Made by a program: the position numbers and the translations under genes. The notes beneath the pieces were generated by a model. It saw only the letters and a list, made by a program, of their open reading frames with translations, was not told the origin of the DNA and did no database searches. From contig NC_047016.1 in NCBI RefSeq assembly GCF_902652985.1, positions 17,732,001 through 17,796,000 of the forward strand: 64,000 nucleotides of DNA, in the 5' to 3' direction. The DNA comes from Pecten maximus. Lineage: Eukaryota. Below are positions 10,114 to 64,000 of the stretch, in pieces (the stretch's first letter is position 1; the number at the start of each line of letters is the position of its first letter).

Positions 10114-10205
10114 GGAAACCTCTTCTAATGTGCAATATATTTGATATAAATAAAATGGGCGTAAAATTTTACACGAATCGTAGTTTCTCTTAAACAAAGC
10201 GCTGG

Positions 10206-17435: not shown

Positions 17436-18615
17436 TTTCTGAGGTCCAACCTGTTTCGTATGCCGAGCGTATATTATTTTTACGACGAGCAAACATGGCC
17501 GCAGAACGGCGCGTCGCGAGCCAACGGTGAGAACAGAAACCAAGACATTTAATTTTTTTAAGGTTCAATAAATTTTTATTTTCAAAGACACCAACAAATG
17601 CAAAAATTTCCTCATACATGAGGGCTAGCATTCGCCATACTTCATTCATCCATTCATTTCATCTATCTGTTACATATATTAATTCATTTTAACCACGCAG
17701 TCATTCATTCTGCTGCTATAACGATAACGATTCTGGGAAGTAATTAGGAGAGAAACCCAGACATATTATGTATATTGACTGCAAGATTCTAATGATTATC
17801 GCGTTTGTTTGTCGTTTACATTCATGGCACACATTTTTTGGTTTATAATTATTGAGCAGTTAACCCGATATTCTGCGACAAAAAAGCGCCCCACATTCGC
17901 CCCCTGACGCTGTATGTGGACTAAAGTCCATTTTAACAAGTGTATGACAAACAACCACTTCTTATTACTTTGTAATCAATATTTATCCTTGTTTCCGTCA
18001 CGATGATTCCCTATATCTTACGTACCGTTGTTTAACGACCTTCATCGTGATTTATTCGGTCATTGTTTAGACATTGAAAGACAAAGTGATTGACTGTTTT
18101 CGAAGCGTACCAGTCTGCGTAACCTGATAATAAAAGAATACAATAAGAAAAATAAAAATGCAACGGTTGACACTTATTGATGTATGACATATTTGCTTGG
18201 TTATTTTTTGTGACAGCTATCCAGACTCGGAACACACTCGAGATGTCTAGACACCTGTTAGAGAAGAGATAGCCCGAGTTTCCTCTGGTCCCGACACCTG
18301 GCCCTAGGGCCAACCCTGGACTATTGGGGGGACGTTAAACAATGAAAAACAAAATATACAAACAGTGACAAAAGCATGGAAATGTTCAACTTAAAGATGA
18401 CATAGTTGGCTGTGTTTGTCATACTTATCCAGCTGAGACAGCATAGAGGCAAATGTTGGATGCTGTTTTATGTCCCATCATATAGTGTAAACTGCTCAGA
18501 CACTTCTAAACCAAACAATGGCAGTAATTATGTCTGCTACGAATGGAACAGGCATTTTTTGTCATCTCACCGAAACGCAATATTCAAAGGAGTCCTGCGC
18601 TTTCTACAATCATAA

Positions 18616-23300: not shown

Positions 23301-23499
23301 TCATACCATATTACACGCTCGCCATACCATATTACACGTTTGCCATACCATATTACACGCTCGTCATACCATATTACACGCTCGTCATACCATATTACAC
23401 GCTCGCCATACCATATTACACGCTTGCCATACCAAATTACACGCTCGTCATACCATATTACACGTTCGCCATACCATATTACACGCTCGCCATACCAAA
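20358..23499. repeat. 21-bp minisatellite (ataccatattacacgctcgcc)
   Basis: Tandem units; a unit length divisible by 3 explains the 1131-aa and 913-aa ORFs. Confidence 0.98.
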
Positions 23500-37000: not shown

Positions 37001-40000
37001 GAACAGTTTGCAATGGTTTTGTTACCTGCGCCCATTAATTTTACTGTAATATTGTGTTAAACATTGATAACATTTTACAATCCATCAATGTTTCATATTC
37101 GAATTAATTACAAGTAGATGATCAGTAGCTTTTAATATACATAATACAATGTATAATATTTCACTTATACAATTTATCTTATATTGGTGAATATATAATT
37201 ACAAATTGGCACTTCACCTTGTAAATGACATTAAAATGACAAATGATTGACACACTAGAGAAGCACAAGGGTTTCATGAATATTAATTACTAATTCTGTA
37301 TCTTTATTTACCTGTCTGTTAAAAGTCTGGAATAATCGCATTATGAACAAGGCGGATATATATGACGTTTTCCCAACACCGACATAAACATGATGCATTG
37401 AAAATTTAAGGGGTATGTCATGAGCAAATAATGTATCGCCGTGTCCAAGCGGTCAATATTGAATTTGTTATTTACGAAAGAAGCATATGTGAATAGAACA
37501 TTTAAATGTTAATTTAGTTATATTCATCCATTTAGCTAGCAACTAAACGGTAACTCATTTTCATTATTTTGAATATTTGTAACTTAGGAAGTATGCCATA
37601 TTTTCGCTGGACACGCATTATGAGAGAAAAGTAATCTCTATATAAGTGACTTAATGAGTGTCTTTTATTATCAAAATTCTGCCACAGACAAACATGAACT
37701 TTTATATATACCTTCCCTATCACTAACTCGCTCGGTCACTTACGCGCTCGGTCACTTACGCGCTCGGTCACTAACTCGCTCGGTCACTAGCTCGCTCGGT
37801 CACTAGCTCACTCGGTCACTCGCTCGGTCACTAGCTCACTCGGTCACTCGCTCGGTCACTAGCTCGCTCGGTCACTAGCTCACTCGGTCACTCGCTCGGT
37901 CACTAGCTCACTCGGTCACTCGCTCGGTCACTAGCTCGGTCGGTCACTCGCTCGGTCACTAGCTCGGTCGGTCACTCGGTCGGTCACTAGCTCGGTCGGT
38001 CACTCGGTCGGTCACTAGCTCGGTCGGTCACTCGCTCGGTCACTAGCTCGGTCACTCACTCACTCACTCGCTCGGTCACTCACTCGCTCGGTNNNNNNNN
38101 NNNNNNNNNNNNNNNNNNNNNNNNNNNNNNNNNNNNNNNNNNNNNNNNNNNNNNNNNNNNNNNNNNNNNNNNNNNNNNNNNNNNNNNNNNNNNNNNNNNN
38201 NNNNNNNNNNNNNNNNNNNNNNNNNNNNNNNNNNNNNNNNNNNNNNNNNNNNNNNNNNNNNNNNNNNNNNNNNNNNNNNNNNNNNNNNNNNNNNNNNNNN
38301 NNNNNNNNNNNNNNNNNNNNNNNNNNNNNNNNNNNNNNNNNNNNNNNNNNNNNNNNNNNNNNNNNNNNNNNNNNNNNNNNNNNNNNNNNNNNNNNNNNNN
38401 NNNNNNNNNNNNNNNNNNNNNNNNNNNNNNNNNNNNNNNNNNNNNNNNNNNNNNGATGTTTACATTCTAAACACACTGAACCGTCCCAGACGATTATTAC
38501 ACTCTATACACACTGAACTGTCCCATATTTTGTTTGCATTCTATGCACACTGGACCGTCCCAGAAGATATTTACACTCTATACACACTGAACCGTCCCGG
38601 ACGATGTTTACACACGATATACACTGAAACGTCACAGACGATGTTTATACTCTATGAACACTGAACCGTTCCAGACGATGTTTATACTCTATGAACACTG
38701 AACCGTTCCAGACGATTGTACTCCATACAACCTGTCTCCGCCAACACCGTCCGAAGAAGACACCATCCCAGGGAATTTCAGCGGTCCCCAAAGACGCTAT
38801 GAGAGAATTGTTCTTTTCAACTGTGTTCCAGAGGACGCTTGAAGGGAACTATTCCCTCAAACGCTGTCCTAATGGATGCTATGAGAGAACTATTTCTTCC
38901 AGCACTGTCCAAGATGGCACTACGATAGAACTATTCCCACCAACACCTTCTTATACTGGGCCCCGTTTTAATTTTTATTCCCAGTTAGTGATATCACCTA
39001 ATGACGAAGTTGTTTAAATTTTCATTTTTGTTGTTGAATAACATTATGACATAGAACGTTATGGACGGATCGAATTCAGAAGTACTACTATATGTTAGTG
39101 ACTCCGAATTCAGAAGTAAATATTAGAGACTACACGGTTCTGGTTTCTGCTGCCGCCCATTCTCCACTGTAACACTTATCATAGGATACTCAACTTACGC
39201 TGATTAATGTATTAAAAAGTATAATGCACCAGTATCGGTAACAGCATTTAAGAAGGACTTTATATGTTTCTCTGCACATGTAAATAATATCAAATACTAT
39301 ATTTCTGGTTTTATTTCACGTTCTATGTATTTAAACTCCATCTGGCTTTTTTATTAACTCATCTTTTTTAAAATGAGTTGCCAAAGGGCGATTTTGGCGC
39401 TGTTTAAGTTATGTTCTTAGATGAATTACTCATGTCCTGTTCGTGATAAAGCAGTAAGTTAAATGACACGAATGCTTTTATTTCGATGTGCATTATCCCG
39501 AAACTTAAAATTGGAGCTTTATTTGTAGACGGCATCTAATTTAGAATCTGCTGAATTTTCCAAAGATGTTGCGAGAAACATAAGCGCCAGATTTCCCAAC
39601 TGGAACACGTTCACCAGAGCAGACGTGAGAAGACAATTCAAGAAACTTGTTGACTTAGGGTTTTCAGCTATCAACGACACTGAGAAACTAAAATCGGTAA
39701 GTCTACCGTGTGAGTAAGGTTTTAGACAAACGGCATCCGCTTTGTGTGAAAAATGACGGGATGACATCAGTTGGAATCTCGGTTTAGCAGTGGTGATACT
39801 TAACATCGCCCAGTGTGTAATGTCAGTGTTATAAAAGCGTATAGGAGTGACTATGTCGTCAGCAATAGCGAGAGACAGTAATGCATAAATATGTCTGAAA
39901 TATACCAGGCATCATACCAAATAAACGAACCTTTTTGTGACCTTAATAAAATGTCTATAGCTATTTCTGGTCCATGATTTAAAAAGACATTTTAAGAAAC

Positions 40001-43000
40001 TTTGGACTTAATCATATTTTTGATTTTGTTATTTTGACATACCACAAAGAAAAAAAAAATAAGTGTTTAAATGTTGGTAGCTATATTTACGTAATTTGAA
40101 GTATTTCTATATTGACATTTAGATTAAAAACGGATATATAGAACTTTTTCGAAATGCTAACATCCAATCACCATATATTCTAATTTACTCTCAATGATAT
40201 ATATTTTAGGTACATGTAATATAATATAGCTAGATAATTAATGAGATACTTCTCCTCCAGATATCCACACTTGAAGCCGAGTTGACAGGTATATACAGCA
40301 CTGGCAAGGTGTGTCTTCCGGAGTTCGGGAAGGGTTGCCTGTCACTGGAACCAGGTAAGAGCTTCCCTGTAACGGGATATTTTGTAAAATTGTCAATTTT
40401 ATTGGTACATGTTTTTGTTTTTAGAAAAGTCGATACTCTCTGTATGCAATAATAGGATTCCAATGTAGTAATTATTGTCTTAAAATAACAGAATTAATCA
40501 AATATTTGACATGTAAACCAATAGAGTCACGGTCGAATACTGAATAACAACGTATCACTGATTTACGTCACCACTCTAGGACGATTTTACTGATGCTAGG
40601 CTGAAGAAAGTGAACAAATCTAAGTGTTATCTTCTTCTTCTGAGAAAGGAAACATCATACAAGTCATCGCAGACGTAAATACACAGACGTAAGACCTGAA
40701 GTCCCGGATGTACCACTTCCCTTCTGTATTGACATTAATATTAATATCCAGTAGAATAACCATAACAATAATAACCAATAGCGAAAACAACCAAACGTAC
40801 TTACGTTTAAACACCAATAGCGAAAACAACCAGACGTACTTACGTTTAAACACCAATAGCGAAAACCACCAAACGTACTTACCTTTAAACACCAATAGCG
40901 AAAACAACCAAACGTACTTACGTTTAAACACCAATAGCGAAAACAACCAAACGTACTTACCTTTAAACACCAATAGCGAAAACCACCAAACGTACTTACC
41001 TTTAAACACCAATAGCGAAAACAACCAAACGTACTTACGTTTAAACACCATTAGTGAAAACAACCAAACGTACTTACCTTTAAACACCAATAGCGAAAAC
41101 AACCAAACGTACTTACGTTTAAACACCATTAGTGAAAACAACCAAACGTACTTACGTTTAAACACCAATAGCGAAAACAACCAGACGTACTTACGTTTAA
41201 ACACCAATAGCGAAAACAACCAAACGTACATAGTTTAAACACCAATAGCGAAAGCAACCAAACGCACTTACGTTTAAACACCAATAGCGAAAACAACCAA
41301 ACGTACTTACCTTTAAACACCAATAGCGAAAACAACCAAACGTACTTACGTTTAAACACCATTAGTGAAAACAACCAAACGTACTTACGTTTAAACACCA
41401 ATAGCGAAAACAACCAGACGTACTTACGTTTAAACACCAATAGCGAAAACAACCAAACGTACATACGTTTAAACACCAATAGCGAAAGCAACCAAACGTA
41501 CTTACGTTTAAACACCAATAGCGAAAACAACCAAACGTACATACGTTTAAACACCAATAGCGAAAACAACCAAACGTACTTACGTTTAAACACCAATAGC
41601 GAAAACAACCAAACGTACTTACGTTTAAACACCAATAGCGAAAACAACCAAACGTACTTACGTTTAAACACCAATAGCGAAAACAACCAAACGTACTTAC
41701 CTTTAAACACCAATAGCGAAAACAACCAAACGTACTTACGTTTAAACACCAATAGCGAAAACAACCAAACGTACTTACCTTTAAACACCAATAGCGAAAA
41801 CAACCAAACGTACTTACGTTTAAACACCAATAGCGAAAACAACCAAACGTACTTACGTTTAAACACCAATAGCGAAAACAACCAAACGTACTTACCTTTA
41901 AACACCAATAGCGAAAACAACCAAACGTACTTACGTTTAAACACCAATAGCGAAAACAACCAAACGTACATACGTTTAAACACCAATAGCGAAAACAACC
42001 AAACGTACTTACGTTTAAACACCAATAGCGAAAACAACCAAACGTACTTACGTTTAAACACCAATAGCGAAAACAACCAAACGTACTTACGTTTAAACAC
42101 CAATAGCGAAAACAACCAAACGTACTTACGTTTAAACACCAATAGCGAAAACAACCAAACGTACATACGTTTAAACACCAATAGCGAAAACAACCAAACG
42201 TACTTACGTTTAAACACCAATAGCGAAAACAACCAAACGTACTTACGTTTAAACACCAATAGCGAAAACAACCAAACGTACTTACGTTTAAACACCAATA
42301 GCGAAAACAACCAAACGTACTTACGTTTAAACACCAATAGCGAAAACAACCAAACGTACTTACGTTTAAACACCAATAGCGAAAACAACCAAACGTACTT
42401 ACGTTTAAACACCAATAGCGAAAACAACCAAACGTACTTACGTTTAAACACCAATAGCGAAAACAACCAAACGTACTTACGTTTAAACACCAATAGCGAA
42501 AACAACCAAACGTACTTACGTTTAAACACCAATAGCGAAAACAACCAAACGTACTTACGTTTAAACACCAATAGCGAAAACAACCAAACGTACTTACGTT
42601 TAAACACCAATAGCGAAAACAACCAAACGTACTTACGTTTAAACACCAATAGCGAAAACAACCAAACGTACTTACGTTTAAACACCAATAGCGAAAACAA
42701 CCAAACGTACATACGTTTAAACACCAATAGCGAAAACAACCAAACGTACTTACGTTTAAACACCAATAGCGAAAACAACCAAACGTACATACGTTTAAAC
42801 ACCAATAGCGAAAACAACCAAACGTACTTACGTTTAAACACCAATAGCGAACACAACCAAACGTACTTACGTTTAAACACCAGTAGCGAAATCAACCAAA
42901 CGTACTTACGTTTAAACACCAATAGCGAAAACAACCAAACGTACTTACGTTTAAACACCAATAGCGAAAACAACCAAACGTACTTACGTTTAAACACCAA

Positions 43001-46000
43001 TAGCGAAAACAACCAAACGTACATACGTTTAAACACCAATAGCGAAAACAACCAAACGTACTTACGTTTAAACACCAATAGCGAACACAACCAAACGTAC
43101 TTACGTTTAAACACCAGTAGCGAAATCAACCAAACGTACTTACGTTTAAACACCAATAGCGAAAACAACCAAACGTACTTACGTTTAAACACCAATAGCG
43201 AAAACAACCAAACGTACTTACGCTTAAACAACAATAGCGAAAACCAATAAACGTACTTACGAAAAGAATATAATAATCCTCCATGCACCTACGCAAGCGT
43301 AGGGCAATTTAGGAAATTTCATAAATGTTTTTGTATTGTATTTAGTATTTCTGTATTGTTATTATTATTAGAAAAGCGTAAGTTTGCGCCAGTTCTACAA
43401 TCGAAATCGTGACATAAGCAACAAGCTTGAAATAGCAAATGAAGTTATTCCAGGAAATCAATAGTGACGTTATACATTTTAAAATTTTATTAATAGAATT
43501 ATCAAATTCAGTCGAGACAATACAACTCTATCCGATACCAAGTATGTCGTTAATTAAGACACACCGCATTTATTAGTGTTACAATACATAGGTTATTCTC
43601 ATAGATATTTGTTAATAAAGTAGATGCAGTAAACAGGATGTTGCTTTCTTAAAAATCACAATAGGGAAATTCAAATTGAGTGAAAACATGCAGATTTTTT
43701 AAGATGATATCAAAAGGTCTGTATCGTCATTGATTAAACATTCAGGGGATGTATTCTATCACAGATACACTTTTTTGGTTATTTAAAGATAGCACGCCAT
43801 GACATGTCTGAGGAAAATAGGAATAAAAAAGATAATAATATTGTTTAAATGTTTATGATGTCGAGGTTTATATTAATTACCCTGCTGAAGATTTTGTTTT
43901 AGATTAAATGGAAATAACATCTTTTCTTGAAAGATTAATGCACTACCTTTAAAGACTCAACAGAAAAGTCTTTATGTTTTCCATTTTATTTTTATATCTT
44001 TTTTTATCTTGAGTATGCTATCAAAGCAATGAAAAGTCTTTGATTTTCATAACACCAGGGCTTACGGATTTGATGGCTGAAAGTAGGAACTATCAGGAAT
44101 TGGCAGCTGCGTGGAAAGGATGGCGTGACGCTTCAGGAAAGAAAATGAAATCGAAGTACACAGATTTTGTAAACGTCATGAACGAGGCCATCGCTTTCAG
44201 TGGTATGATGTGTACCAAATCCATATTTTTTAACAAGTTTGAATTTCGATATTATGTAGTGTATTGAATTGTGTAATACGTATACCGTACTACGATTTTC
44301 ATAGATTTGAAGTAAGTCAGTCTTGTTAGACTCCTTGGTATCAAAAGTATATAACTTGAATAGTTAAACGTGTGGATATTTCGTGAGTAAATCATTGTTG
44401 CTGGCTTCTTTTCGTGGAGAGCATCTCCTCTACTATACATGTTACAGAGTGGTTTGTCTCGGTCAGGGGACATAACTCCTTACAAGTTACAAGCTTCGAT
44501 TTGTCCCGGTAAGGGGAGAGAACCCACAACCTGTTACATGGCTTATTCTCAAATTAAAACCTAACACGGGACGGTAATAAAGGAGTAATTAACACGAAAG
44601 TGTGTTTAAAAAGAAGAACAAATCTTTTATAGTCACCTCTTACAATGGTGATATTCTTACGCTCTCCCTGCTGGGTAGCTATGATATCGAAAATAATGCT
44701 GACATGCAAACGATAAATAAAATTAATCCAAGTAATCAATAATGATATATATTTTGAGATTTTATTAATGCATGTAAATTTCAGTCGAGAAAATACAACT
44801 ACATCCGATACTGCGTATATCGTTAATTAAGGCACATCCACATTTGTTAGTGTTACAAATATTCTGATGGAACTTTTGTTTATATGTGTTTTGGAAATTG
44901 GTTTGTCATATAATACCGCTTGCTTTAACGATGACAAGACCATAATGAATAAAACAACATAGCAAAAAGTATTGAAGGGAAATATCACATAATTATATAA
45001 GTCAGTGTATACCCAAACAAAAATGAAAAAGTATCAGTTTTGAAGAATACATAGTAGACATTATATCACATGAAATGATTGACATGTTTTAGGTTACAAT
45101 GACACTGGAGAGTACTGGAGATCGTGGTATGAGACGCCTACTTTTGAGCAGGACGTCAAAAATCTGTATGAGCAGCTGCGTCCACTATATGAAAATCTAC
45201 ATGCCTATGTTCGCCGGAAGTTGATGAACAAATACGGGGCACAGTACTTCCCTGATAACGGACACATTCCCGCTCATTTGTTTGGTACAGTATTCTGCTT
45301 GTTGTTTTAAAAATGATTCTATAACACTACCAAACTGGTAAAACAATATCGATACCGGTTTTTCTTGCGCTTTCGGGACAAGTACAATCTAATTAAAATT
45401 AGACTTGTAATTTCCGCTCATCTACGATACACTGCAATACAAGATCTAACAACACCCCGTCGGAGGTCACCTCAGCATGACCCCTGAGCTCAGCCAATCA
45501 GCACGTCGCCTATACAATTTTCGGTGTGATTTCATTCTTCGGAAGTATACATACGTACGTAACGTTCCCGAGGTATCCCGATGGTCGATAGCAACGGTTA
45601 ACAATATGGCTTCGCCCAATCCACCTAACTGAGACCACCTCAAGCGAATTAATAGTTTTACAAACGTGTGCTGCCTGTGTGTATTTGTCCTTAATCGTAC
45701 GTGAGAGAGACAGCGAAGGCAGCAGTGTCGCGAAAAAAATAGTTTGAAAGGGAATAACGTGTACGATAACGGTTTTCGAAATCCAGTTGGCGACACAATC
45801 CGTCCTGTCGACAAGACAATGTATAATCGTTTTCTGTTCTTCTTTCAATGTAACGTCCAGAGGATTAGCAATTTGTTTTATTACCGTGACCATTAAGATA
45901 GTCTACCAATAATGTTTGTGAAATTTTGCGTATTTCAAATCGACGCTGAATTGAGGCGTTAATACTAAGGACACGCAACCGAAGGCTCGTATAAGACTGT

Positions 46001-49000
46001 TTGTCATTGGTTGACTTATGACGTCATTGACCAGTTTTCATTGACTTATATTGGAAGCTCAAAGGTAATGCTGAGATGACCTCGAACTGTGTGTTGTTAG
46101 ATCTTGTATTGCAGTGTATCATAGAGGAGCTGAAATTACAAGTCTAATTTTAATTAGATTAGGAACAAGTATTAACACAATCCTCATTGCATACCTACTG
46201 ACCAAGCTGATTAAAGCTAGAACAGTTTACGGGTTTTTATTGTGCTATGCGAACATTGAGTTCACTCCTTCACATAGCTATAGGAAGCGTGATCCCGGTG
46301 TGTATTAATAAACCATTGAGTTGACTCCTTCACACAGCTATATGAACCATTGAGTTGACTCCTCCACACAGCTATATGAACCATTGAGTTGACTCCTCCA
46401 CACAGCTATATGAAACATTGAGTTGACTCCTCCACACAACTATATGAACCATTGAGTTGACTCCTCCATACAGCTATATGAACCATTGAGTTGACTCCTC
46501 CACACAACTATATGAACCATTGAGTTGACTCCTCCACACAGCTATATGAACCATTGAGTTGACTCCTCCACACAGCTATAGGAAACGTGATCCCGGTGTG
46601 TATTAATTAACCATTGAGTTGACTCCTCCACATAGCTATATGAACCATTGAGTTGACTCCTCCACATAGCTATATAAACCATTGAGTTGACTCCTCCACA
46701 CAGCTATATGAACCATTGAGTCGACTCCTCCACACAGCTGTAGGAAACGTGATCCCGGTGTGTATTAATAAACCATTGAGTTGACTCCTCCACACAGCTA
46801 TATGAACCATTGAGTTGACTCCTCCACACAACTATATGAACCATTGAGTTGACTCCTCCACACAGCTCTATGAACCATTGAGTTGACTCCTCCACACAGC
46901 TATAGGAAACGTGATCCCGGTGTGTATTAATAAACCATTGAGTTGACTCCTCCACATAGCTATATGAACCATTGAGTTGACTCCTCCACACAGCTATATG
47001 AACCATTGAGTTGACTCCTCCACACAGCTATATGAACCATTGAGTTCACTCCTCCACTCAGCTATATGAACCATTGAATTGACTCCTCCACACAGCTATA
47101 TGAACCATTGAGTTGACTCCTCCACACAGCTATATGAACCATTGAGTTGACTCCTCCACACAGCTATATGAACCATTGAGTTGACTCCTCCACACAGCTA
47201 TATGAACCATTGAGTTGACTCCTCCACACAGCTATATGAACCATTGAGTTGACTCCTCCACACAGCTGTAGGAAACGTGATCCCGGTGTGTTTTAATAAA
47301 CCACTGAGTTCCGAACTAAGGACTGTTTAAAACGTTCATTAATGAGTGATCTACTCTTATCATTATAATTAATGAGCGATCTACTCTTATCATTATAATT
47401 AATGAGTGAGCTACTCTTATCATTATTATTAATGAGCGATCTACTCTTATCATTATAATTAATGAGCGAGCTACTCTTATCATTATAATTAATGAGCGAG
47501 CTACTCTTATCTTTATAATTAATGAGTGAGCTACTCTTATCATTATAATTAATGAGCGATCTACTCTTATCATTATAATTAATGAGCGAGCTACTCTTAT
47601 CATTATAATTAATGAGCGAGCTACTCTGATCTTTATAATTAATGAGTGAGCTACTCTTATCTTTATAATTAATGAGCGAGCTACTCTTATCTTTATAATT
47701 AATGAGCGAGCTACTCTTATCATTATAAACTCAACCCATGGATGTTAGTGATGATCAGTAAGCTGTCCTCAAACAGAATACCATTCCTTGTACCAAATAT
47801 GTTTTAATCCATTTGTATTTGTAGGCAACATGTGGTCACAAGAATGGGTTAATATATACGACCTAGTAGAACCTTACCCTGAGGCTACCAGCGTGGATAT
47901 TACAGCCAAGATGGTGGAAAAGGTAAAGGAATACTGGAATTGGGAGTCACTAGGAACTATGGACCGAAAGCGGTTTTCAATAAAAATAGGTTCTTAAAAG
48001 TCTAATAGATTGTGTATTGGTTTGATAAACGGGTTAATTACCGGGCTATTTAAACTTTATTTCATTCATATTCAACATTAAGAATAGAAAATAGAAGTAA
48101 TTTATATAAATCCGTTTTCCTCAGCTGTTAATAAAAGAAATATGTTACTCCGTTCGTAGACTGTTGTTACTCCATTCATAGACTGTTGTTACTGCATTCG
48201 TCGACTGATGTTACTCCATTCGTAGACTGTTGTTACTCAATTCGTAGACTGTTGTTACTCCATTCGTAGACTGATGGTACTACATTCATAGACTGTTGTT
48301 ACTGCATTCATAGACTGTTGTTACTGCATTCATAGACTGTTGTTACTGCATTCATAGACGTATGTTACTCCATTCATAGACTGTTGTTACTGCATTCGTA
48401 GACTGTTGTTACTCCATTCGTAGACTGTTGTTACTCCATTCATAGACTGTTGTTACTCCATTCGTAGACTGATGTTACTCCATTCATAGACGTATGTTAC
48501 TGCATTCATAGACTGTTGTTACTCCATTCGTAGACTGTTGTTACTCCATTCGTAGACTGTTGTTACTCCATTCGTAGACGTATGTTACTCCATTCGTAGA
48601 CTGTTGTTACTCCATTCGTAGACTGTTGTTACTCCATTCGTAGACTGTTGTTACTCCATTCGTAGACTGATGTTACTCCATTCATAGACTGATGTTACTC
48701 CATTCGTAGACTGTTGTTACTCCATTCGTAGACTGATGTTACTCCATTCGTAGACGGTTGTTACTCCATTCGTAGACTGTTGTTACTCCATTCGTAGACT
48801 GATGTTACTCCATTCATAGACTGATGTTACTCCATTCGTAGACTGTTACTCCATTCGTAGACTGATGTTACTCCATTCGTAGACGTATGTTACTCCATTC
48901 GTAGACTGTTGTTACTCCATTCGTAGACTGTTACTCCATTCGTAGACTGTTGTTACTCCATTCGTAGACTGTTGTTACTCCATTCGTAGACTGTTGTTAC

Positions 49001-52000
49001 TCCATTCGTAGACTGATGTTACTCCATTCGTAGACTGTTGCTACTGCATTCGTAGACTGTTGTTACTCCATTCGTAGACTGATGTTACTCCATTCGTAGA
49101 CTGTTGTTACTCCATTCGTAGACGTATGTTACCAAAGAAAGATAACTTGTACTTTAGATCTTTTAAACACAAATTAATCATTTGTTATTAAAGGTGCAAA
49201 TTTTCCGAAATATGTTCCCAAACCATTTCACCTAAAGTTCTTGTTGAGAATACCTCGAATTAAACCATATGTATGGATTTATCTATCTCAGATAATGGGT
49301 ATAGATAATTCTTATTCCGTAATTGAATATTGAAGCAAGAAGTATGGTGAAATCTTGTTAAATGTTCAAAATTTTCGTTTGATCAGGGCTATAATATAAC
49401 ACATATGTACCGAGTAGCGGAAGAGTTCTTCACATCAATTGGCCTTGACGCTATGCCGGAAGGGTTCTGGACAAAATCCATGCTCGAGAAACCGGCAGAC
49501 CGTGAAGTAGTGTGCCATGCCTCTGCATGGGATTTCTATGACGGCGAGGACTTCAGGTAAGTTTGTAAGTTTAAGAAAACTTTTCTGTCCTACCAAACCA
49601 CGATGTTACTATGTTAACGGTTCTTAAAAAAGCTATGTGAATCAATGGCCATATTACGCTACAGTTTGATAGATCTGTAATTGTGAAGCCGAAGCATCTC
49701 ATCTATAAGATAAGGAACACTTAACTCACAAGTTAAATTGCGAATTATTAAAAAATATTTTAGCCGTTTGTGCTGACAGATGAATTTAATGCATACCTTT
49801 TACCTAAATAAGGTTTAAACTCAGACTTATTCATATTTTAATTATTGATGATGTGTCGAAGCCATTACTAGTATTGATTGGAAGACATGCTTGTTTTAGG
49901 ATAAAACAGTGTACAGCAATTACAGCAGAGCAGCTACGTGTAGTTCACCACGAAATCGGTCACGTGATATATTATCTTGCATACAGGAAGTTACCACGTA
50001 TATTTAGAAAGGGTGCCAACCCAGGTATTATTTCACGGAGCAGAGTGAAGATGCATGTTTAAAAACACTGGCTTTTTGCGAAAATATATTTTTTGTTGTG
50101 GCGGGAAGGCCTTAAAACAAAATGGTTTCGGATGTCTTTTTTACTTAACTTGGGAACGTTAAGGCTTTATCTCGATCGGATGGATGGGTATAACAGGTTT
50201 TATCTTAGTGACTTCAGCTTATGTTTTTGTGTGTTTTGGCTCATAGAGAGCTATGCGGTGTGGGCAGGTCACCTTTCCAATACTGATGTAAGTCATATTG
50301 TATGATAGTGACCTTTCGCGTACGCATTTGTACAATATGTTATTAGGGAGTATATTGCGTGTTTGTGTATAAAGGACATCCTGGTAATATGTTTGAGCTG
50401 TATTGATTTGTAGGATCATCCACTGTACAACAATAACAGGTGTCGGTCTACTCACTATACATCACGAGATGGGGCACATTGTATATGACCAAGAGTATAA
50501 ACAGCAGCCTATGATTTACCGTGGGGGAGCCAACCCGGGTAACCGGACATACAACTTACATTTCTCGTTACAGAATTCAGTTCCTGGTTTCATTCTACCA
50601 CTCGGCATTTTTCTTGTTTCTGGTGTTGCTTTACAGCTGACATAATGCTGATTCTAGTGTTATTGATTCCCCTTTTTATATAAAAATATAAAACAAACTG
50701 AAAAAATAAATAAAAAAAGGATAATTTAATAAACATAAGATATACACTTTTTATATCGGTGAAGACACCGCATCAAATTCTAGTCTGAAATCAGATCTTA
50801 ATGTCATATGACGAGGAATGTGTATCTGTGTATCTATGTGAAAGGCATCATTCTAAAGGCATCAAATGTCTGCAGATGTCTGTTTACTAATTGGTCAAAT
50901 GGAACTAAAGAATACAAATTACAGTTTTTAAAACCACAGTAGTATGCCTGCAGTTGTGCTACATAAAACAAAAGAGTAGATATGTATTTGTCATTAACAT
51001 CTGTCAAAGTATATAACAAAGGCTTTAAAGTCTGTACTAGACTAACATGTTTTATCAGGACGTTAATGTTCACATAACACACAAATAGTTAATACAATCA
51101 AACGAAACTTAAAAAACAAGTAAAAATACACAAAAATATATATGTATATATAAATAAAATAATATTTATTATATTTGAAATAGGCCAAAGTTGATATATA
51201 TTTTATAATCGAGATTTCAAGGCCTGTTATCGAGAGCGGATTGTTTTGAAGAACATAATAATTTAAACTGTTCAAGCTGCAAACAGAATGTGACATGACA
51301 TACTCTCCCGTCATACAATGCAGAGTTGCTTCCCGTTAGTTGATGTTCAAATAAATCATTCCTCTGTTTACGTTATACGACTAGGAATGATATGATTGAT
51401 GTAACATTATACTGAAATCTTCAATACATAAGTGTCCTTCAGGTTTATTATACACTTCATATCATTACCGGAAAAAAATGACGAATTTTCTATTAATATC
51501 AATCTGAATAAGGTTGTATATTAATACACATTATTTTGTGTATCTGTGTTATGTCATGTTTTGTAATTTGATAATGCCTCTATACACACACGACTGCGTT
51601 TTATCATTTCTGCAGCATGTTGACCTACTTGACTACTAGATATGATCTTAGACTGTCAAATGTAATACACTACAAGTGTTTGCCTGTGTGGTAGTAGTTC
51701 ACGAATGTTTGTTGGCTAGGATGTTTTGACTTGAAATTATACAGAGACGTGTATAAACATGTTCCGAGTTGGAGGAAATGCATAATATAGCATGAATGTC
51801 GTAACCGAAACCCGTCGAAACGTTAAGATGAGAATAGGCGTAACACGTTTTTGATAATTGGGATTGTATGATTGTATGATTGTATGATGATTGTATGATT
51901 GTATGATTGTATGTACATGTGTAAACCTGAGCTGATATTGTTGTCTCCCTGATGCGTTTTCTAATGTATTTTAATTACATGAATTTAAGGGAGCGCAGAT

Positions 52001-55000
52001 CAATATTACATGTTAACAATATCCGTATTTGGCGACAACATCTCCGCTGTTTCAACATACCTGCAGAATAGAAGCAGTGTGTTTATAGATTTGCCCTTTT
52101 GCTGTTCTCGGGGAATGCTCGTCCTCGTGGAATTGATTATTCTCTTTCGTGTAGATTATTTGCGTCTTGATGAAGAGGGTGGATTGTCTCAAAAGTCGAC
52201 GATTTACTTGTCTGTACTGTCGTTATTACAACATTACCAATAATCTATTTCTATTAATATGCATCAAGCGAGCGTCTGGTTTTTTAGGATTGAGTACCTA
52301 TGCCATACCGTCGTTAATACTTACTAACCCCCTTCTCTATATACTAAATACATACATATTATGATAACTTCCACTGCCGAGAAACCTCTGAAAAATGTGG
52401 TCATTTTGCATTAATGATTAATAGTCCTACACGTAAATGTTAGTCGTGTGTTTTCTCTTCGGATGCGGACATCATAATATCAGAATAGCTCACAACTTTC
52501 CTATATACATTATATATATACAATTTTGTACTTATGTGAATACATTTTCTGTATACATCATTTAAAAATAGCAACACATGGGAACCTTTGATCAAAGTGC
52601 CCCCAGAATGCTGAGTCTTTCTTTGTAGGATCAAACAATGCACAACACTGACTGAGAGTCAACTTCTCACGGTTCACCACGAGATGGGACACGTTATCTA
52701 TTTTTTGGCCTACAACAACCAACCTGTTATTTATCGTGATGGAGCTAATCCTGGTAATTCAACACATCTTTCCAATATATTTAATATTCTCTCTTGCAAT
52801 AGGTGTGCATATCAGTATTTATCAAAAAAAGATATGCCCCACCAATGCTTTGAAATAAGTAAAATCGAGAGTTATGTATCATATATTTGTAGGATTAAAC
52901 AATGTACAACGGTAACAGAGAGTCAGCTTCTCACCGTTCATCATGAGATGGGGCATGTCATCTATTATCTAACTTACGCCAATCAGCCTGTTCTGTTTCG
53001 TAGGGGAGCAAACCCCGGTAATCCATTTACTATTTCTGTAGTAGAAATATGCCTGTTAGTGTAAATATTATATCTGTATATATATTAGATTAGATTATTT
53101 CTTCTTTCAGAAAGTCAAATATTAGAATCATAAAGTAATGTTATCCATTATATTATCAGATTTTCAGTGAGGAATAATAATCATTGCATCTTATAACATC
53201 TCTCTTTTATTTACATTTGTTTATAAATCTCTCGATTTATAAACAAATGTACATTCAAAGATGCATATTAATCGAATGCTTTCAAATAACTTTGTCTTAA
53301 TAACATATTAAAGAAAAAAACTAAACAAAAACAAAAAACAAAAAAACAACAAAAAACAAAAAAACCTCTTTACTACGATTGACGGTCACTATATACAAAC
53401 TACTATCATACAAATTTATCATACTGCTGTCTGTACCCTTTTTCGTTTTAAGCATGTTACGCATGGATATGGTTATTTACCTAATATAGTCGCATTGCTA
53501 GGCTACTTTACTTTCAAATTTGAAAATTGATGTTACCTAAGCATGTGGAATGATGTGTTGCATGATTATAAAAAATGAAGGTGTTGTGGGATTAGAAAAT
53601 CATTGAACATGTAACTATTTTTCATTGTATTTGTAATGGAATAATGAACAATACTTCATCTGAAATTAGGTATATCTAAAGATGCTAAACAATTTCTTAT
53701 ATGATAGATATTGCATTACATCAGAATGTCATAAACAATTGTTCTGGACATTAGTAAATATCTCTGAATATGATTTTTTGCGCAGTGAGATTTGAAGTAA
53801 ATGTTGATAATTCCCCATTCAGACGTCTGGTTTTAATAGCGTCAATGTGTAGAGGCATTTTATCGATCCGCTTCTAATCCAATATTCATGATATGATGCA
53901 ATGCCATTACAGGGTTTCACGAGGGAATGGCTGATATCGTCAGTTTGTCGTTTCAAACTCCCGAGCATATGAAGGCGATTGGCCTGTTGGATGAAATTCC
54001 TACTGATGACAGTAGGTATACCTACATTAGACGTGTCTGAAAATGTACTGAAATACTTTAAACAAACACAAAATATGTTTTTCTTGCACACAGAGAAAAC
54101 AATGAAAATTGAAACAGAAAGGTTAATAAAATTTCAAACGTTCTTGAGCTCAACGTAAAATATATGCATAAAAATCTGGCAATAGAAGAATTAATCGAGT
54201 TTTTCGTTTTTCTTTACCTCGTGTTTTTCTAGTTTTGTTTTATGCTAGATTTGTTTGTATACTGTCAATACGTTTTTATTTCAAATGCCATATCGGGTTT
54301 TTGAGTTAGTTATAAAGAAAGCTCGCTATTCTCATCAACCAAACTCACTTGCAGAGAGTGACCTGAACTTCCTGTTAAAGATGGCTCTAGACAAGGTTGC
54401 TTTCTTGCCGTTTGGCTACCTGATCGATCAATGGCGCTGGAGCGTGTTTAATGGGGCGACAACTCCAGCAACCTACAACCATGACTGGTGGGATCTCAGG
54501 TAAAGTTTACATTACCGGAATAACGAGTCAGCGATTTTCCTTTTATTTCAGCTTTATATTCATTATTCCCGATACACCCTACAAGCAAATTCACATTTTA
54601 AGATGCTGATAACCTGTGTGTCGTTGATCTGTGTGTTGTTAACTTGTGTGCTGTTAACCTGTGAGTTATTAATTTGTGTCGTTTACTTATCTGTTGTTAA
54701 CCTGTGTGTTATATCCTTTGTGTTAACCCGCGTGTTAGAATATCATTTGTGCTGTTAACCTGTGAATTGTTAACCTGTGTGTTGTTATCAACTGTGTGTT
54801 GTTAACCCGTGTGCTGTTAACGTGTGTAATGTAATAACATTTTTGTTGATATAACCTGTGTTGGTGACCTGTGTGTTGGTGACCTGTGTGTTGGTGACCA
54901 GTGTGTTGGTGACCTGTGTGTTGGTGACCTATGTGTTGGTGACCTGTGTGTTGGTGACCTGTGTGTTGGTGACCTATGTGCTGTTAACCTGCGAATTGTT

Positions 55001-57434
55001 AACCTGTGTGTTGGTGACCTGTGTATTGGTGACCTGTGTGTTGGTGACCTGTGTATTGGTGACCTGTGTGTTGCGGACCTGTGTGTTGGTGACCTGTGTA
55101 TTGGTGACCTGTGTGTTGGTGACCTGTGTATTGGTGACCAGTGTATTGGTGACCTGTGTATTGGTGACCTGTGTGTTGGTGACCTGTGTGTTGGTGACCT
55201 GTGTTGGTGACCAGTGTATTGGTGACCTGTGTATTGGCGACCTGTGTATTGGCGACCTGTGTGTTGGTGACCTGTGTGTTGGTGACCTGTGTTGGTGACC
55301 TGTGTGTTGGTGACCTGTGTATTGGTGACCTGTGTATTGGTGACCTGTGTGTTGGTGACCTGTGTGTTGGTGACCTGTGTTGGTGACCTGTGTGTTGGTG
55401 ACCTGTGTGTTGGTGACCTGTGTGTTGGTGACCTGTGTGTTGGTGACCTGTGTGTTGGTGACCTGTGTATTGGTGACCTGTGTATTGGTGACCTGTGTAT
55501 TGGTGACCTGTGTGTTGGTGACCTGTATTGGTGACCTGTGTGTTGGTGACCTATGTGCTGTTAACCTGCGAATTGTTAACCTGTGTGTTTATAGCTGTAT
55601 GTTGTAATAACATGTTTGTTGTTAAAACATGTGTGTTGGTGATCTGCGTGCTGGTGACCTGTGTGCTGTTAACCAGTGCGCCTTGTATGCCATGCTTAAA
55701 ATCTTAATGTTATTTAATTTTCGATATCAACTTTTAAAATAACAGTTAATTTTAGCATTATATTACCTGTTGCAGATGTAAATACCAAGGTATATCCCCT
55801 CCAGTGGAAAGGTCTGAGGATGATTTTGATCCTGGTGCAAAGTATCACATTCCTGGAAATACACCTTATATAAGGCAAGTCCGTCCTTTTAGGTGGCTAT
55901 GTAGCAGTGGCACGATTGTGCGTATTACTTAACCAAATACACAGTATTTTGAAGATGGACGATATAAGTGATACATAATATTGACATTGGAAACTAAAGG
56001 TTCATTTTCATTCTTGGTATTGTAATAAACATTCTCAAATAAATCTCCATGATATTTGGTGTATAAAGGTGTGAATACGTACGTAATGATAAACACAGCA
56101 CTCGCTTAGATTACAGTTATTTCTGGTAATAAAACCCCAGAAAACTTGGTATTCCAGTTTGATATCTTACAGTATAAATGCCCTACAGAAGCCTGTGGGT
56201 GGTACCGTCTCAAGATTGTAATACCTACACGTTATAGGTAGGGTAAGATTACGTGTTTTTTGTGAAGAAAAATCTAATCAGTGACATTATAGCACACTGA
56301 TACAAATGTAATGTTGCTGATTATATGATTTCCCCTCTTTGTACAGGTATTTTGTGAGTTACATTCTGCAGTTCCAGTGGCACAAGGCACTGTGTGACGA
56401 GATCGGATACGTCGGGCCACTACATAGATGTGACGTGTATCGTGACTCAGCTGCCGGGGATCTGTTGAGGTTAGTAATGATACAATACACAAAGTAATAT
56501 GTCACACATAGGTTAATAACACTAGCGTTATTTCCCATGGTCTTACGTCTACCGTATTGAATACTTGGGGGGACAAAGGTTATGACCAAATATTCCCGAA
56601 ACCTGTTATGTAAATCTATGTCGAATCCAGGTAGTAATGTCACGTTCTCGTAATTAGGACCAGCTTGTGAAAATGGGGCTAATAGGAATATCAACAAACA
56701 TCGAATACGTCTAAATTCGTATCGTACTGGAAAGTGTAATACTTTCCTGTGGGGTCAGGATATCAACGAAAGCCTACCCTTGTTAAAATAAACTATCGTT
56801 TCTGTAAGCACTGTTTTCCATCAGCTATTGGCATTTATAACGAAAACCATGCTTTTGTGATCATTCACTTGAAGATGGATTAAACTTGGATATGAAAAAT
56901 AGTATCTTTTACATGTAAGTTGTAAGCTTGCCCTTTAGGTAACGATTTAAGTAACCATCGAGTAACCGTCTGGTGTTGAAAAGTCTGTGATGTCCTAGCT
57001 TTCTAGTTTATACCTGATTCACATAGTCAAAAGGAGTTTGAAGAAAGCAAAGAAGCCCTTGCTAAAATATTTCATAATTTCTCTCCGGGTCAATAATTTT
57101 CAGGCAGATGTTCATGATTTCCCCTAATAATCTTCTTATACCATGTTTCAGAAATATGTTGATGTTGGGTTCATCAAAACCATGGCAGGAAGCAATGGAA
57201 GTGATTACGGGATCTCCTGAAATGAGTGTCCTTCCTATGGTGGAGTACTTTGATCCTCTGTTACAGTGGCTAAAGGAACAGAACAAGGAGGAGAACATTG
57301 GATGGAGCTCCATATGTCCAACAGATATCCCATCTCCCGATTCTCCTAGATCTGCATCAGGTTCCAGCAACATACATCCGACCGCTCTGCTTCTTGCCGG
57401 CCTAATTTTAGTTTTGGGAATAATTTTTTATTAG
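34097..57434 (+). CDS. ACE: Single-domain angiotensin-converting enzyme-like peptidyl-dipeptidase (peptidase M2), 642 aa, four alternative catalytic exons
   Basis: Exons 34097-34285, 39529-39696, 40261-40354, 44059-44202, 45093-45284, 47825-47922, 49387-49556, [one of 49900-50024 / 50414-50538 / 52629-52753 / 52893-53017], 53913-54011, 54355-54499, 55776-55874, 56347-56469, 57152-57434; total 1929 nt with consistent phases. ACE motifs: [36 protein letters not shown](M/I)[59 protein letters not shown]-terminal signal peptide and hydrophobic C-terminus. Confidence 0.97.
37720..38092. repeat. 12/16-bp low-complexity tandem repeat (ctcggtcact[ag]ctcg) running into the gap
   Basis: Read directly. 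Confidence 0.9.
38093..38454. other. Assembly gap (362 N) in ACE intron 1
   Basis: Run of N; exons 1 and 2 join in frame without needing sequence from the gap. Confidence 1.
38455..38730. repeat. Degenerate ~38-bp tandem repeat (acactgaaccgtcccagacgatgtttacactctat)
   Basis: About 7 diverged units. Confidence 0.8.
40773..43262. repeat. 39-bp minisatellite (accaatagcgaaaacaaccaaacgtacttacgtttaaac), ACE intron 3
   Basis: Highly homogeneous units; the 13-codon period explains the 719-aa - strand ORF. Confidence 0.98.
45385..46161. mobile_element. Non-autonomous TIR DNA transposon, probably AcademH-derived, in ACE intron 5
   Basis: ~95-bp imperfect TIRs (aatctaattaaaattagacttgtaatttc...), a 10-bp TSD with one mismatch (gggacaagta 45375-45384 / ggaacaagta 46162-46171), and an internal frameshifted RecQ-type helicase fragment [19 protein letters not shown] / [14 protein letters not shown] on the - strand. 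Confidence 0.8.
46251..47310. repeat. 34-bp minisatellite (aaccattgagttgactcctccacacagctatatg) with a recurring ~28-bp insert
   Basis: Insert ggaaacgtgatcccggtgtgtattaata at about 46282, 46581, 46743, 46905 and 47271. Confidence 0.95.
47338..47727. repeat. 30-bp minisatellite (aatgagcgagctactcttatcattataatt)
   Basis: 13 units read directly. Confidence 0.96.
48143..49132. repeat. 22-bp minisatellite (gttactccattcgtagactgtt), ACE intron 6
   Basis: Read directly. Confidence 0.96.
49900..50024 (+). CDS. ACE: ACE alternative catalytic exon 8a: (R)[41 protein letters not shown](G)
   Basis: 125 nt, ttttag acceptor, gtatta donor, phase 2 in and phase 1 out, intact HEXXH. Confidence 0.88.
50414..50538 (+). 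CDS. ACE: ACE alternative catalytic exon 8b: (R)[41 protein letters not shown](G)
   Basis: 125 nt, ttgtag acceptor, gtaacc donor, phase 2/1, intact HEMGH. Confidence 0.88.
52629..52753 (+). CDS. ACE: ACE alternative catalytic exon 8c: (R)[41 protein letters not shown](G)
   Basis: 125 nt, ttgtag acceptor, gtaatt donor, phase 2/1, intact HEMGH. Confidence 0.92.
52893..53017 (+). CDS. ACE: ACE alternative catalytic exon 8d: (R)[41 protein letters not shown](G)
   Basis: 125 nt, ttgtag acceptor, gtaatc donor, phase 2/1, intact HEMGH. Confidence 0.92.
53212..53251. other. Perfect 18-bp-stem hairpin downstream of the alternative exon cluster
   Basis: tacatttgtttataaatc-TCTC-gatttataaacaaatgta. 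The palindrome is certain; its function is unknown. Confidence 0.85.
54610..55675. repeat. 15-bp minisatellite (gacctgtgtgttggt) with degenerate flanks, ACE intron 10
   Basis: Core at about 54855-55550; explains the VTCVL and GDLCV ORFs. Confidence 0.95.
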
Positions 57435-61467: not shown

Positions 61468-62980
61468 CTATCCCATGGCGTGGATCAGGATAAAGGCTAC
61501 TGTCAAAACACTACACAATGGTGCTGGGGTTATTTCGGATGCAGAATCTGGTGTGTTCCCCGCCGTTTCAAACTTTGGACATTCAATATCCCAACCTACT
61601 TTGTGTCCACTATTTTGATTGGTCAGCCATTCCATTAAAGGTTGGAAATATTCAAGTAATGGAGTTGCACTCATCGTCTGTGTCCCCGTCAACACTTGCA
61701 TAGCTTCTGGCCAGGGACGAGATGCTCCGAGTTCCAACATCTCTCTATGGAAAAAAATACGCATAAACAGTTATGATATGGGCATATTGTGGAAGTCGTT
61801 TTAGATTATACCTTAAAACGTCAAAATTACGTCATAGAAAAAGTATGTGCTCTTGATGACATCAAACATTCTATACCTGATTAATACCTATATTCTAAGC
61901 TGCCATTAATACTGTGGATACATCAAAATATGTATGTAGCAATATAATAGATCTTTCATTGTGCATTATAAAACATTGAAAGCGTTTATGATACATCAAC
62001 TATATGTTTATTTGCCTTGTTGAAATCTTTAATAACAAGACCTAAACGTAAAGAAGACTATGTCAGAAAATTATAACGCTCATTCAATCACATAGGATGT
62101 GCATGTTTCCGCAATAAAGGAGATCAGTGCTTACTTCAGTTTTCTTCCGGACTGCGTGAGTCCTGTTATATCACATTTGTGTAGTGGTTTATCTTGTTGT
62201 TGTCCCATGCCGCACAAAGCTTTTTGCCATTGGAATTTCAAAATAGTGCTGACGAAATTTCTTTTGAGATAGAGAAAACATTGTCATTATCAATTATGGT
62301 ATATAATTAATGCAGTTTTTAAATGAACGGTATAAGACGATTTCGTACAGTCACGATACAAAACATTTTTTTTAAAACATTAAAGCTTGGACATTTTCAG
62401 AAGCCGCCTTAAAAGGATGATCTATCGTGGTCTTAATCTAACCTAAAACGACTCAGACGCAATTACTTAAAACGTCCATATAAAAATGAAACAATAGAAA
62501 TACAATGTTCAAACTATTATTGAATGACCTACAGGTACAATTACAAATACTGTATGTTTTATTATTTATCATAGAAAAATGGATATTTACTTGATATAAG
62601 GCTTGTTACCAGCAATTTGGTAAGCAGAAGCGATGTCAAGGTCCTCTTCTGTCCTCTTCACTGGGGGCGAAACGCCCTGATACTGACATCTTCGAAAAGA
62701 AGAAACATTAGATGAATTAGATCTATTTATTTGAAGGAATATATCTAAGCATATTTAGTCTTGTTAAATTATAATTTAATCTATTTCTTAGTTCTTCAGT
62801 TGCTTGTTTTTGTGTTTTAAGAAATGAGAGGTTACCGTAGTTTCCACCAATCGCGGTTGAAGGTGTTGCTAGGAGTTCTACCTTGGAACACATCCCACCG
62901 CCACTTATCAACAATGTAGTAAAAAGGAAGGGGTGCCACGTGCTCTAAAGCAAGCCTCATCATGTCATTTATATCAAGTT
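61468..62980 (-). CDS. 3' part of a second, divergent ACE-like gene (possible pseudo-peptidase); 5' exons lie beyond the window
   Basis: - strand exons 62980-62836 (LDINDMMRLALEHVAPLPFYYIVDKWRWDVF...WWKLR), 62689-62591 (CQYQGVSPPVKRTEEDLDIASAYQIAGNKPYIK), 62260-62135 (NFVSTILKFQWQKALC...PLHKCDI...GRKLK), 61744-61468 (EMLELGASRPWPEAM...LLEYFQPLMEWL...). Sizes 145/99/126 nt and phases match gene B exons 10-13; all introns GT-AG; no stops. Confidence 0.93.
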
Positions 62981-63474
62981 CTACAAGACAAAACAATTTA
63001 AATGTTTTAAAACATTACAGTAATGAGTACAGGACATGAACATGTTACCGGAAAGTATATGACACTTGGACTTCACAACTATTATTGTGCCGGAAACGGA
63101 CTGATTCATTCTCATACATAATATAGTCCATGTCCTTCTATCTAAATATTTGACTTATATACGCTTCGGAGTCACAATGTGATACAACATTCTCCTAAAT
63201 CACTCTTTGAGTATTCCTACATAATTGCTTAAGTTATAAGCCTTTCATTATTCCTATAGTACTCTGATAAATGTCATTTCATCACTTCACTCATCAACAA
63301 AGATGGGCCGAGTACAGAACGACATACACACCAGTTCCCATGTACAATATCAGATAGATACTAAATAACTACGATCAGAATTTCATCTCTCACACGTCAC
63401 AATTGGCCAAATAATAATTATCACAATGTTACAAATGCTCATGTTTGTTACAGTATATTATCATCAGATATAAG

Positions 63475-64000
63475 AACAAGAGACAAATCAGCCTGTTCAC
63501 TCACTTGTTTTTATGGCAACTTTGAAGATGAACATCTCCCTGGGCATCTTGCTAATTGAGAAAAATCGTTTAAAGATTTAATCTTATTTCACCCCTTTGC
63601 CTTTGAATATAGGTCATGGCCTTTTATTTGAGCAAAGTTGGTAGCCCTAAACCAAAGCCACAGGCACAGCATCAGGTTAATGGGCCTCAAGGATATTGAG
63701 AAGTAGTTTAAGGATGTTTAGCCTTTTTGACACCTGTCATCTTGAATGTATGTGAAAGTAATTTATTTGAACAAAATTGGTAGCCCTTTAACACCGCGTG
63801 TTTCAAACTCAATATCATCTTCCTGGGCCTCTTGCTATTTGAGAAAAAGTTGTTTTAAAGATTTTAGCCTATTTTACCCCATGTAACATTGAATATAGGT
63901 CAAAGTCATTTATTTTAACAAACTTTGTCACCTTTTCATCCCAATCAGGTCTCAGTGCCCCACAGGTATTCAAAAGAAGTTGTTTAAAGGAAAATGTTGA
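63475..64000. repeat. Diverged ~140-bp tandem units, probably the core of a satellite-bearing dispersed element
   Basis: Three recurrences of tttaaagatt..cctattt..ccc...ttgaatataggtca...tttatttgaacaaa.ttggtagccc. Confidence 0.6.

Follow-up and report, generated by a model that had tools for sequence, protein, structure and literature searches.

The stretch of Pecten maximus DNA analyzed here (64,000 nucleotides, referred to throughout as the window, whose coordinates are used unless otherwise stated) carries a gene for an angiotensin-converting enzyme (ACE)-like protease of the peptidase M2 family, in which the exon encoding the zinc-binding helix of the active site is present in four tandem copies. 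An earlier reading of the letters alone, hereafter the original prediction, had proposed that these copies are spliced in one at a time. The evidence set out below leaves us highly confident that they form a tandemly duplicated, mutually exclusive exon cluster in the scallop orthologue of CgACE, the membrane-anchored, single-domain ACE of oysters. The gene and its exons are laid out as follows:

34097-57434, forward strand: coding span of the ACE-like (peptidase M2) gene, 13 coding exons, an exact spliced match of three RefSeq proteins
34097-34285, 39529-39696, 40261-40354, 44059-44202, 45093-45284 and 47825-47922, forward strand: coding exons 1 to 6, placed by protein threading
49387-49556, forward strand: coding exon 7, constitutive, ending in ...WDFYDGEDF and the first two bases of an Arg codon, followed by a phase-2 intron
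One of the next four entries, forward strand: coding exon 8, placed by protein threading
49900-50024, forward strand: exon 8a, with HHEIGH, Tyr25, Lys37 and Arg-Val at positions 13-14; used by isoform X3
50414-50538, forward strand: exon 8b, with Asp25/Gly37, Gly-Val-Gly at positions 9-11 and HHEMGH; in no public isoform
52629-52753, forward strand: exon 8c, with Phe25/Asp37, resembling the S2 pocket of the human C domain; used by isoform X2
52893-53017, forward strand: exon 8d, with Tyr25/Arg37, resembling the S2 pocket of the human N domain; used by isoform X1
53913-54011, forward strand: coding exon 9, constitutive, reading G-FHEGMAD... and carrying the third zinc ligand, the Glu of the gluzincin motif
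54355-54499, 55776-55874 (with a GC donor) and 56347-56469, forward strand: coding exons 10 to 12, placed by protein threading
57152-57434, forward strand: coding exon 13, the last, with a hydrophobic C-terminal stretch in its translation

The three RefSeq proteins are titled angiotensin-converting enzyme-like isoforms X1, X2 and X3 of Pecten maximus (P0276, P0225 and P0278 in our files, respectively). They were retrieved using a Lingula ACE as bridge query, a search of representative proteins with the last exon having recovered a Lingula protein and no identical match, and all three are reproduced residue for residue from the window. The boundaries that reproduce them are those of the original prediction, from the numbering of exons 7 and 9 to the junction coordinates. 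P0225 matches the Pfam profile PF01401 over positions 3-581 of 581 (residues 22-600, E 4e-257), and the scallop protein is thus a single-domain M2 peptidase, about 65% identical to oyster ACE proteins. Its gluzincin zinc site is complete, with HEXXH in all four exon-8 copies and the Glu of GFHE in constitutive exon 9; the start of exon 9 aligns with GFHEA of human ACE, immediately after the human stretch aligned to exon 8. The hydrophobic C-terminal tail is likely a membrane anchor, by analogy with the oyster orthologue.

The four copies lie exactly, to the base, where they had been placed from sequence, and they have the features then ascribed to them. Each is 125 nucleotides long, has a pyrimidine-rich tract and AG on its upstream side and GT on its downstream side, is open only in frame +1, and encodes 41 residues with Cys4, HHE(M/I)GH at positions 16-21 and GANP at positions 38-41; intron 7 is in phase 2, and the intron after each copy in phase 1. 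Every copy on its own matches PF01401 at positions 332-372, with 48-63 bits against a gathering cut-off of 23, and can be aligned over its full length with the zinc-helix segments of the two human ACE domains and of Drosophila AnCE. The single-copy Lingula gene has identical exon borders, and the exon is therefore old. Searching the 64-kb window with each peptide (tblastn) matched the four copies only (E 1e-12 to 1e-26; next E>0.1), and the remaining coding exons have no second match within the gene, which bears out the claim that no other exon is duplicated. Pairwise protein identity among the copies ranges from 49 to 83%, with 8b the most divergent and on the longest branch of the exon tree. 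Recomputation of the closest pair gave the values first reported: 8c and 8d share 34 of 41 residues, and 17 of those 34 are written with different codons.

The sole difference among the three RefSeq isoforms is the copy of exon 8 that they contain: 8a in X3, 8c in X2 and 8d in X1. Each holds exactly one copy, and oyster mRNA contigs, discussed below, likewise hold one form or the other. We propose that each mRNA would take exactly one 125-nucleotide copy of coding exon 8, so that a single gene would yield one enzyme resembling the N domain (8d, Tyr/Arg), one resembling the C domain (8c, Phe/Asp), one of another type from 8a (HHEIGH, Tyr/Lys, Arg-Val) and possibly a fourth from 8b (Asp/Gly). 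In this scheme the reading frame itself would enforce exclusivity. Exon 7 stops two bases into a codon and every exon-8 copy one base into a codon; when a second copy is read in the resulting shifted frame, a stop appears within its first seven codons, whichever of the four it is, and when exon 7 is joined straight to exon 9 a stop follows after six codons. Because 125 is not a multiple of three and both double inclusion and skipping run into stops, only single inclusion keeps the frame, and the proposal that the alternatives are used one at a time is supported on this count as well as by the isoform records. Premature-stop mRNAs are generally removed by nonsense-mediated decay, and aberrant transcripts with zero or two copies would be expected to meet that fate. 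The introns between copies measure 389, 2090 and 139 nucleotides; since all are GT-AG and long enough to splice, incompatibility of the steric or spliceosome type is not the explanation in the scallop.

The exchange affects a well-studied part of the enzyme. Exon 8 encodes the HEXXH zinc helix and the helix that follows it, equivalent to residues 367-407 of human testis ACE; by alignment, exon position i corresponds to residue 344+i of the human N domain and to residue 366+i of testis ACE. Zinc ligands, catalytic Glu and the disulfide Cys are invariant among the copies. Positions 25 and 37 correspond to Tyr369/Arg381 in the human N domain and to Phe391/Glu403 in the C domain, and Tyr369 and Arg381 hydrogen-bond with RXP407, an N-selective inhibitor, in the S2 subsite, contacts that are held to explain its selectivity (PMC2975193). 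Positions 10, 13 and 14, which also vary among the copies, correspond to Asp354, Ser357 and Thr358 and fall in S1' and beyond S2'; all three belong to the set that was swapped in mutants converting the N domain to the C-domain type (PMC7148434). The original prediction spoke of four catalytic centers. That wording was overstated, as zinc ligands and catalytic Glu are identical, although the lining of the S2 and S1'/S2' pockets, which it assigned to this segment, does change, and the gene is better described as having one catalytic center with up to four pocket linings. By analogy with the human enzyme, we infer that these linings alter substrate or inhibitor preference.

Comparison with the orthologous loci of three other scallops (Mizuhopecten, Ylistrum and Argopecten) and of the flat oyster Ostrea edulis indicates that the alternatives have been maintained. 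In the three scallops the array is present in the same order, with AG/GT at every intact copy, and the 8a orthologue stands first in each and always reads HHEIGH. Synonymous divergence (dS) across orthologous comparisons is 0.4-1.5, and the ratio of nonsynonymous to synonymous divergence (dN/dS), calculated for each exon as had been suggested, spans 0.007-0.40: 0.007-0.12 for 8d, 0.07-0.11 for 8c, 0.13-0.40 for 8a, and 0.16 for 8b between Pecten and Argopecten, at a dS of about 1.5. Between copies within Pecten the synonymous distance is saturated, which dates the duplications far back and implies that selection has retained each copy. The view that this is an old duplication under purifying selection is thus supported by the array and the low dN/dS in four scallop genera, but it needs qualifying for 8b, which has been lost in two of the three other genera. 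Likewise, a check of orthologous copies for stops and broken splice sites found them intact in these relatives with the exception of Ylistrum 8b. A tree of 18 exon sequences (123 columns) is weakly resolved; it recovers an 8a clade, a pair formed by 8b and the second Argopecten copy, and a pair formed by the second and third Mizuhopecten copies, and does not separate a shared from a separate duplication in oysters and scallops.

The four Mizuhopecten RefSeq isoforms, X1-X4, differ solely within residues 358-393. The second slot of the Mizuhopecten array is occupied by a young 8c-type copy in place of 8b. The two 8c-type copies (positions 21608-21732 and 29388-29512 of the Mizuhopecten yessoensis locus, L017) lie 7.7 kb apart at a dS of 0.17, end in GANT rather than GANP, and are annotated in separate isoforms (X1 and X3). 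Their similarity at that distance suggests that the 8b position was overwritten by a recent duplication or by gene conversion.

Several observations weigh against the reading of a four-way cluster whose products differ in specificity. The RefSeq isoforms X1-X3 are computed gene models, and the 90% protein cluster that contains them includes no isoform with 8b. The Ylistrum homologue of 8b has an in-frame stop and a frameshift and has lost the Cys. Contigs from four RNA-type runs covered neither exon 7 nor any of the exon-8 copies and yielded no joint, although conserved exons may be filtered silently from such contigs, so that this is not evidence of absence. Finally, differences in specificity are extrapolated, by inference, from mutagenesis and crystal structures of human ACE, to which the scallop sequence is about 60-68% identical within the exon.

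The alternative that best withstands the evidence is a three-way cassette, in which 8a, 8c and 8d are used and 8b, though intact-looking, is silent or dying in Pecten maximus. We consider this a genuine possibility, if not the favored one. Its appeal lies in the missing 8b isoform and the broken Ylistrum homologue, and also in the replacement of 8b by a young copy in Mizuhopecten (dS 0.17 to its neighbor) and in the long branch that marks 8b as the most divergent of the four. Set against this, the open frame, AG/GT ends, Cys, HHEMGH and GANP of 8b are all intact, and its counterpart in Argopecten is intact as well and matches Pecten at 21 of the last 22 intron bases upstream of the acceptor; this identity, and a dN/dS of the size given above at such synonymous distance, would not be kept by a neutral relic. 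Moreover, the Asp25/Gly37 pair of 8b recurs in an annotated isoform of the sea urchin Strongylocentrotus. The "four-way" of the original prediction is accordingly upheld as to four intact exons, with 8b under constraint in Pecten and Argopecten, and weakened as to the use of the fourth by the lack of an 8b isoform, the Ylistrum pseudo-exon and the absence from Mizuhopecten. On balance, 8b may be used in mRNA.

A different question is how a copy is chosen. The original prediction likened the cluster to Dscam and Mhc, and the likeness holds for the outcome. Competing RNA pairing of the Dscam exon 6 or 14-3-3zeta type, in which selectors located after each copy would pair with a docking site in the final intron of the cluster, is an improbable basis for choice or exclusivity here. 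A complementary pair of 18 nucleotides (89%) does link 52757-52774, just after 8c, with 53546-53563, and a second, weaker pair involves 50839-50860. The candidate docking sequence, however, has no counterpart that we could find in the other scallops, and the introns are unalignable beyond about 10-45 nucleotides from the exons. Pairing the post-exon introns with the last intron gives duplex energies at the level of shuffled sequence (z between -2.1 and +1.2). Pairing of this docking-selector kind was therefore rejected on the grounds of a non-conserved candidate and chance-level energies, and with it the mechanistic half of the Dscam/Mhc comparison. We return to exclusivity imposed by the reading frame as the preferred account.

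The original prediction described this kind of exon swapping for this animal. It is not peculiar to it, since RefSeq entries from scallops, oysters, snails and sea urchins already include isoforms of this type. In Ostrea edulis two copies lie 45 nucleotides apart, separated by a short intron with a TACTAAC-like branch site, and 20 of 34 identical residues are written with different codons; in oysters, exclusivity is probably due to this 45-nucleotide intron being too short. In Magallana gigas and Crassostrea angulata, RefSeq isoforms X1 and X2 differ solely at exon positions 25, 29, 31 and 37. Two oyster open reading frames of 634 residues (P0349 and P0354), from contigs of about 2-2.8 kb assembled from sequencing runs, differ at exactly the same four positions; as an uninterrupted 1.9-kb open reading frame of an intron-rich gene must come from spliced RNA, both oyster forms exist as mRNA. 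Among snails, Littorina saxatilis has two tandem copies and its X1 and X2 differ there only, and in Biomphalaria X1 and X2 differ in the zinc-helix exon segment only. In Strongylocentrotus purpuratus the exon is longer, with exons 8 and 9 fused, and is present in five open copies in tandem, with four annotated isoforms; three isoforms are annotated in Lytechinus. A 20-kb eukaryotic metagenome contig from ENA (L013) has two copies 37 nucleotides apart, one Phe/Asp and the other Tyr/Arg. Lingula has a single copy.

Two further observations concern these lineages. Introns in the metagenome contig are very short, and it carries a row of several ACE domains or genes; in one of these the two zinc-helix exon copies flank the 37-nucleotide interval, itself GT-AG. 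A Magallana gigas protein in UniRef (P0345, 667 residues) has part of a second exon-8 copy directly after the first (GANP followed by EDQLL...), and looks like a mis-annotation caused by tandem copies. A profile search with the four 41-residue peptides for short run-derived protein fragments crossing a junction returned nine single-exon gene calls, all from the DNA of other species and none from P. maximus, and led to the metagenome contig L013.

These data bear on the possibility that only one copy is truly spliced, the other isoform records being artefacts of homology-driven gene models and the extra copies relics. The computed status of the RefSeq isoforms and the lack of a junction among the contigs of the four RNA-type runs speak for this explanation. 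However, every intact copy is under purifying selection with its splice sites preserved in four genera, both oyster forms are present as assembled full-length mRNA contigs, and independent annotation of several species displays the same pattern, so that we regard it as very unlikely. It should be added that the four runs were chosen for a small share of matching words on the assumption that this meant exon-only coverage, whereas the share actually came from the unspliced stretch 53367-54520. Collapse or mis-joining of paralogous ACE genes during assembly can be set aside almost entirely: the genome does have no fewer than seven other ACE-type zinc exons, with six lying inside about 100 kb, but the neighboring paralogues are spaced 8-20 kb from one another, lie on the opposite strand and have a single zinc exon each, the four copies span 3.1 kb without any N between them, and the same array is found in three other, independent scallop assemblies.

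The RNA contigs have a feature of their own. In all four runs, which come from three studies, they begin at 53367-53392, right after an A-rich tract (53300-53366), and read across exon 9, intron 9 and exon 10 without splicing, one run going on spliced into exon 11. In one run the contig is preceded by Illumina adapter sequence, and there is no comparable depth upstream. The common start could be an internal one, giving a transcript without the zinc exon, or the contigs could have been cut at the repeat.

Variation across lineages also favors our preferred reading, a mutually exclusive cluster of the zinc-helix exon. We compared ten species clusters, drawn from five lineages: the alternatives differ at position 37 in every cluster and at position 25 in nine, and no other of the 41 positions toggles as often. 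Nine of the ten clusters pair a Tyr/Arg copy with a Phe copy that has Asp, Gly or Asn at position 37. Among 181 distinct M2 segments, Arg37 occurs with Tyr25 37 times and with Phe25 four times (Fisher p = 7e-9, a value that is indicative only because the sequences are related). It is tempting to speculate that the dichotomy between Tyr/Arg and Phe/acidic S2 pockets is an old, family-wide two-state switch, which many invertebrates, with scallops, oysters, periwinkles and sea urchins among them, as well as the eukaryote of the metagenome contig, would deliver by exclusive splicing rather than by domain duplication; in its strongest form, an exon pair would have existed in early bilaterians, and the vertebrate N and C domains would each have fixed one state. 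We put this forward tentatively, and think it rather doubtful as it stands.

The window corresponds to positions 17,732,001-17,796,000 of contig 2 of the assembly. Another ACE-type gene neighbors the first in tail-to-tail orientation, at 61471-64000 on the reverse strand and extending beyond the window to about 64517; its zinc-helix exon is single-copy (contig 2, 17796395-17796517). Further ACE-type zinc exons are found on contig 2, five at 17.83-17.87 Mb and one at 44.63 Mb. Given these neighboring ACE-type genes, the genome uses gene duplication as well as exon swapping.

Some features of the surrounding sequence should also be recorded. Intron 11 (55875-56346) has a GC donor (GCAAGT) in place of GT, as exact protein threading requires, and an assembly gap of 362 N (38093-38454) lies inside intron 1. 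Much of the window consists of large minisatellite arrays, whose periods are 15-44 nucleotides and whose copy number reaches 165; introns of the ACE gene contain five of these arrays. The long spurious open frames in the window are due to the arrays, which are located as follows:

40774-43261, 46311-47274, 47338-47728, 48143-49132 and 54610-55678: minisatellites within the ACE gene
689-3698, 7035-7775, 10205-17438, 20360-23497 and 24383-27309: minisatellites elsewhere in the window

Full-text literature, mostly outside subscription journals, was searched for exclusive or duplicated exons in connection with ACE, with peptidase active sites and with the host groups, and yielded no description of such a cluster. 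The isoforms are already public in RefSeq; what appears to be new is the recognition of a recurrent cluster that toggles S2, of its breadth and of its structural meaning. The closest described relative is CgACE of the Pacific oyster, a dipeptidyl carboxypeptidase shown to be active, anchored to the membrane at its C-terminus and with a role in fertilization (PMC3235092). The genes are orthologous, with the single domain, a C-terminal anchor that is likely in the scallop, and the level of identity noted above in common, and dipeptidyl-carboxypeptidase activity is predicted for the scallop protein from the oyster one. They differ in that oysters have two copies, four residues apart, and the scallop has four; the CgACE study described one cDNA and made no mention of exons or alternative forms (PMC3235092). 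The two oyster forms are natural minimal variants for testing the effect of S2 on substrate choice. As oysters need the orthologue for fertilization, tissue- or sex-specific exon choice would also be of interest in bivalves.

Mutually exclusive exon clusters are classically represented by Drosophila Mhc, Dscam1 and 14-3-3zeta, exons 9/10 of vertebrate PKM, and the exon pairs of CaV and NaV channels. Human mutually exclusive exons have been surveyed (PMC9741552). The scallop cluster resembles the classical ones in its tandem homologous exons of equal length and phase, of which one is proposed to enter each mRNA, in its age and purifying selection, and in isoforms that are otherwise identical. 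Unlike clusters governed by docking sites, it has no detected docking-selector pairing, and we attribute exclusivity to the frame. It differs further in what is exchanged, which here is the catalytic zinc helix of a protease, an exchange not known to have been described in family M2.

Vertebrates diversified ACE by duplication of the whole domain and by a testis promoter. Human somatic ACE and the scallop gene both provide two versions of the zinc site that differ at S2, represented in the scallop by 8d (Tyr/Arg) and 8c (Phe/Asp). In human somatic ACE, however, both sites sit on one polypeptide, whereas the scallop swaps one 41-residue exon within a single domain, and a scallop cell could make one version without the other. 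ACE is a much-studied drug target, and telling the two human active sites apart has been a long-standing aim; Tyr369/Arg381 and Phe391/Glu403, the very residues toggled here, are residues used by inhibitor designers for domain selectivity. The insect paralogues AnCE and Acer offer a third comparison, as they too are diversified single-domain ACEs in one genome, and the scallop likewise has an adjoining array of paralogues. Insects, though, duplicated whole genes, whereas in the scallop exon cluster the scaffold stays constant and the pocket-lining helix alone changes. ACE diversity would thus have arisen by a third route, exclusive splicing of the zinc-helix exon, in addition to the duplication of domains seen in vertebrates and of genes seen in insects and in the scallop genome itself.

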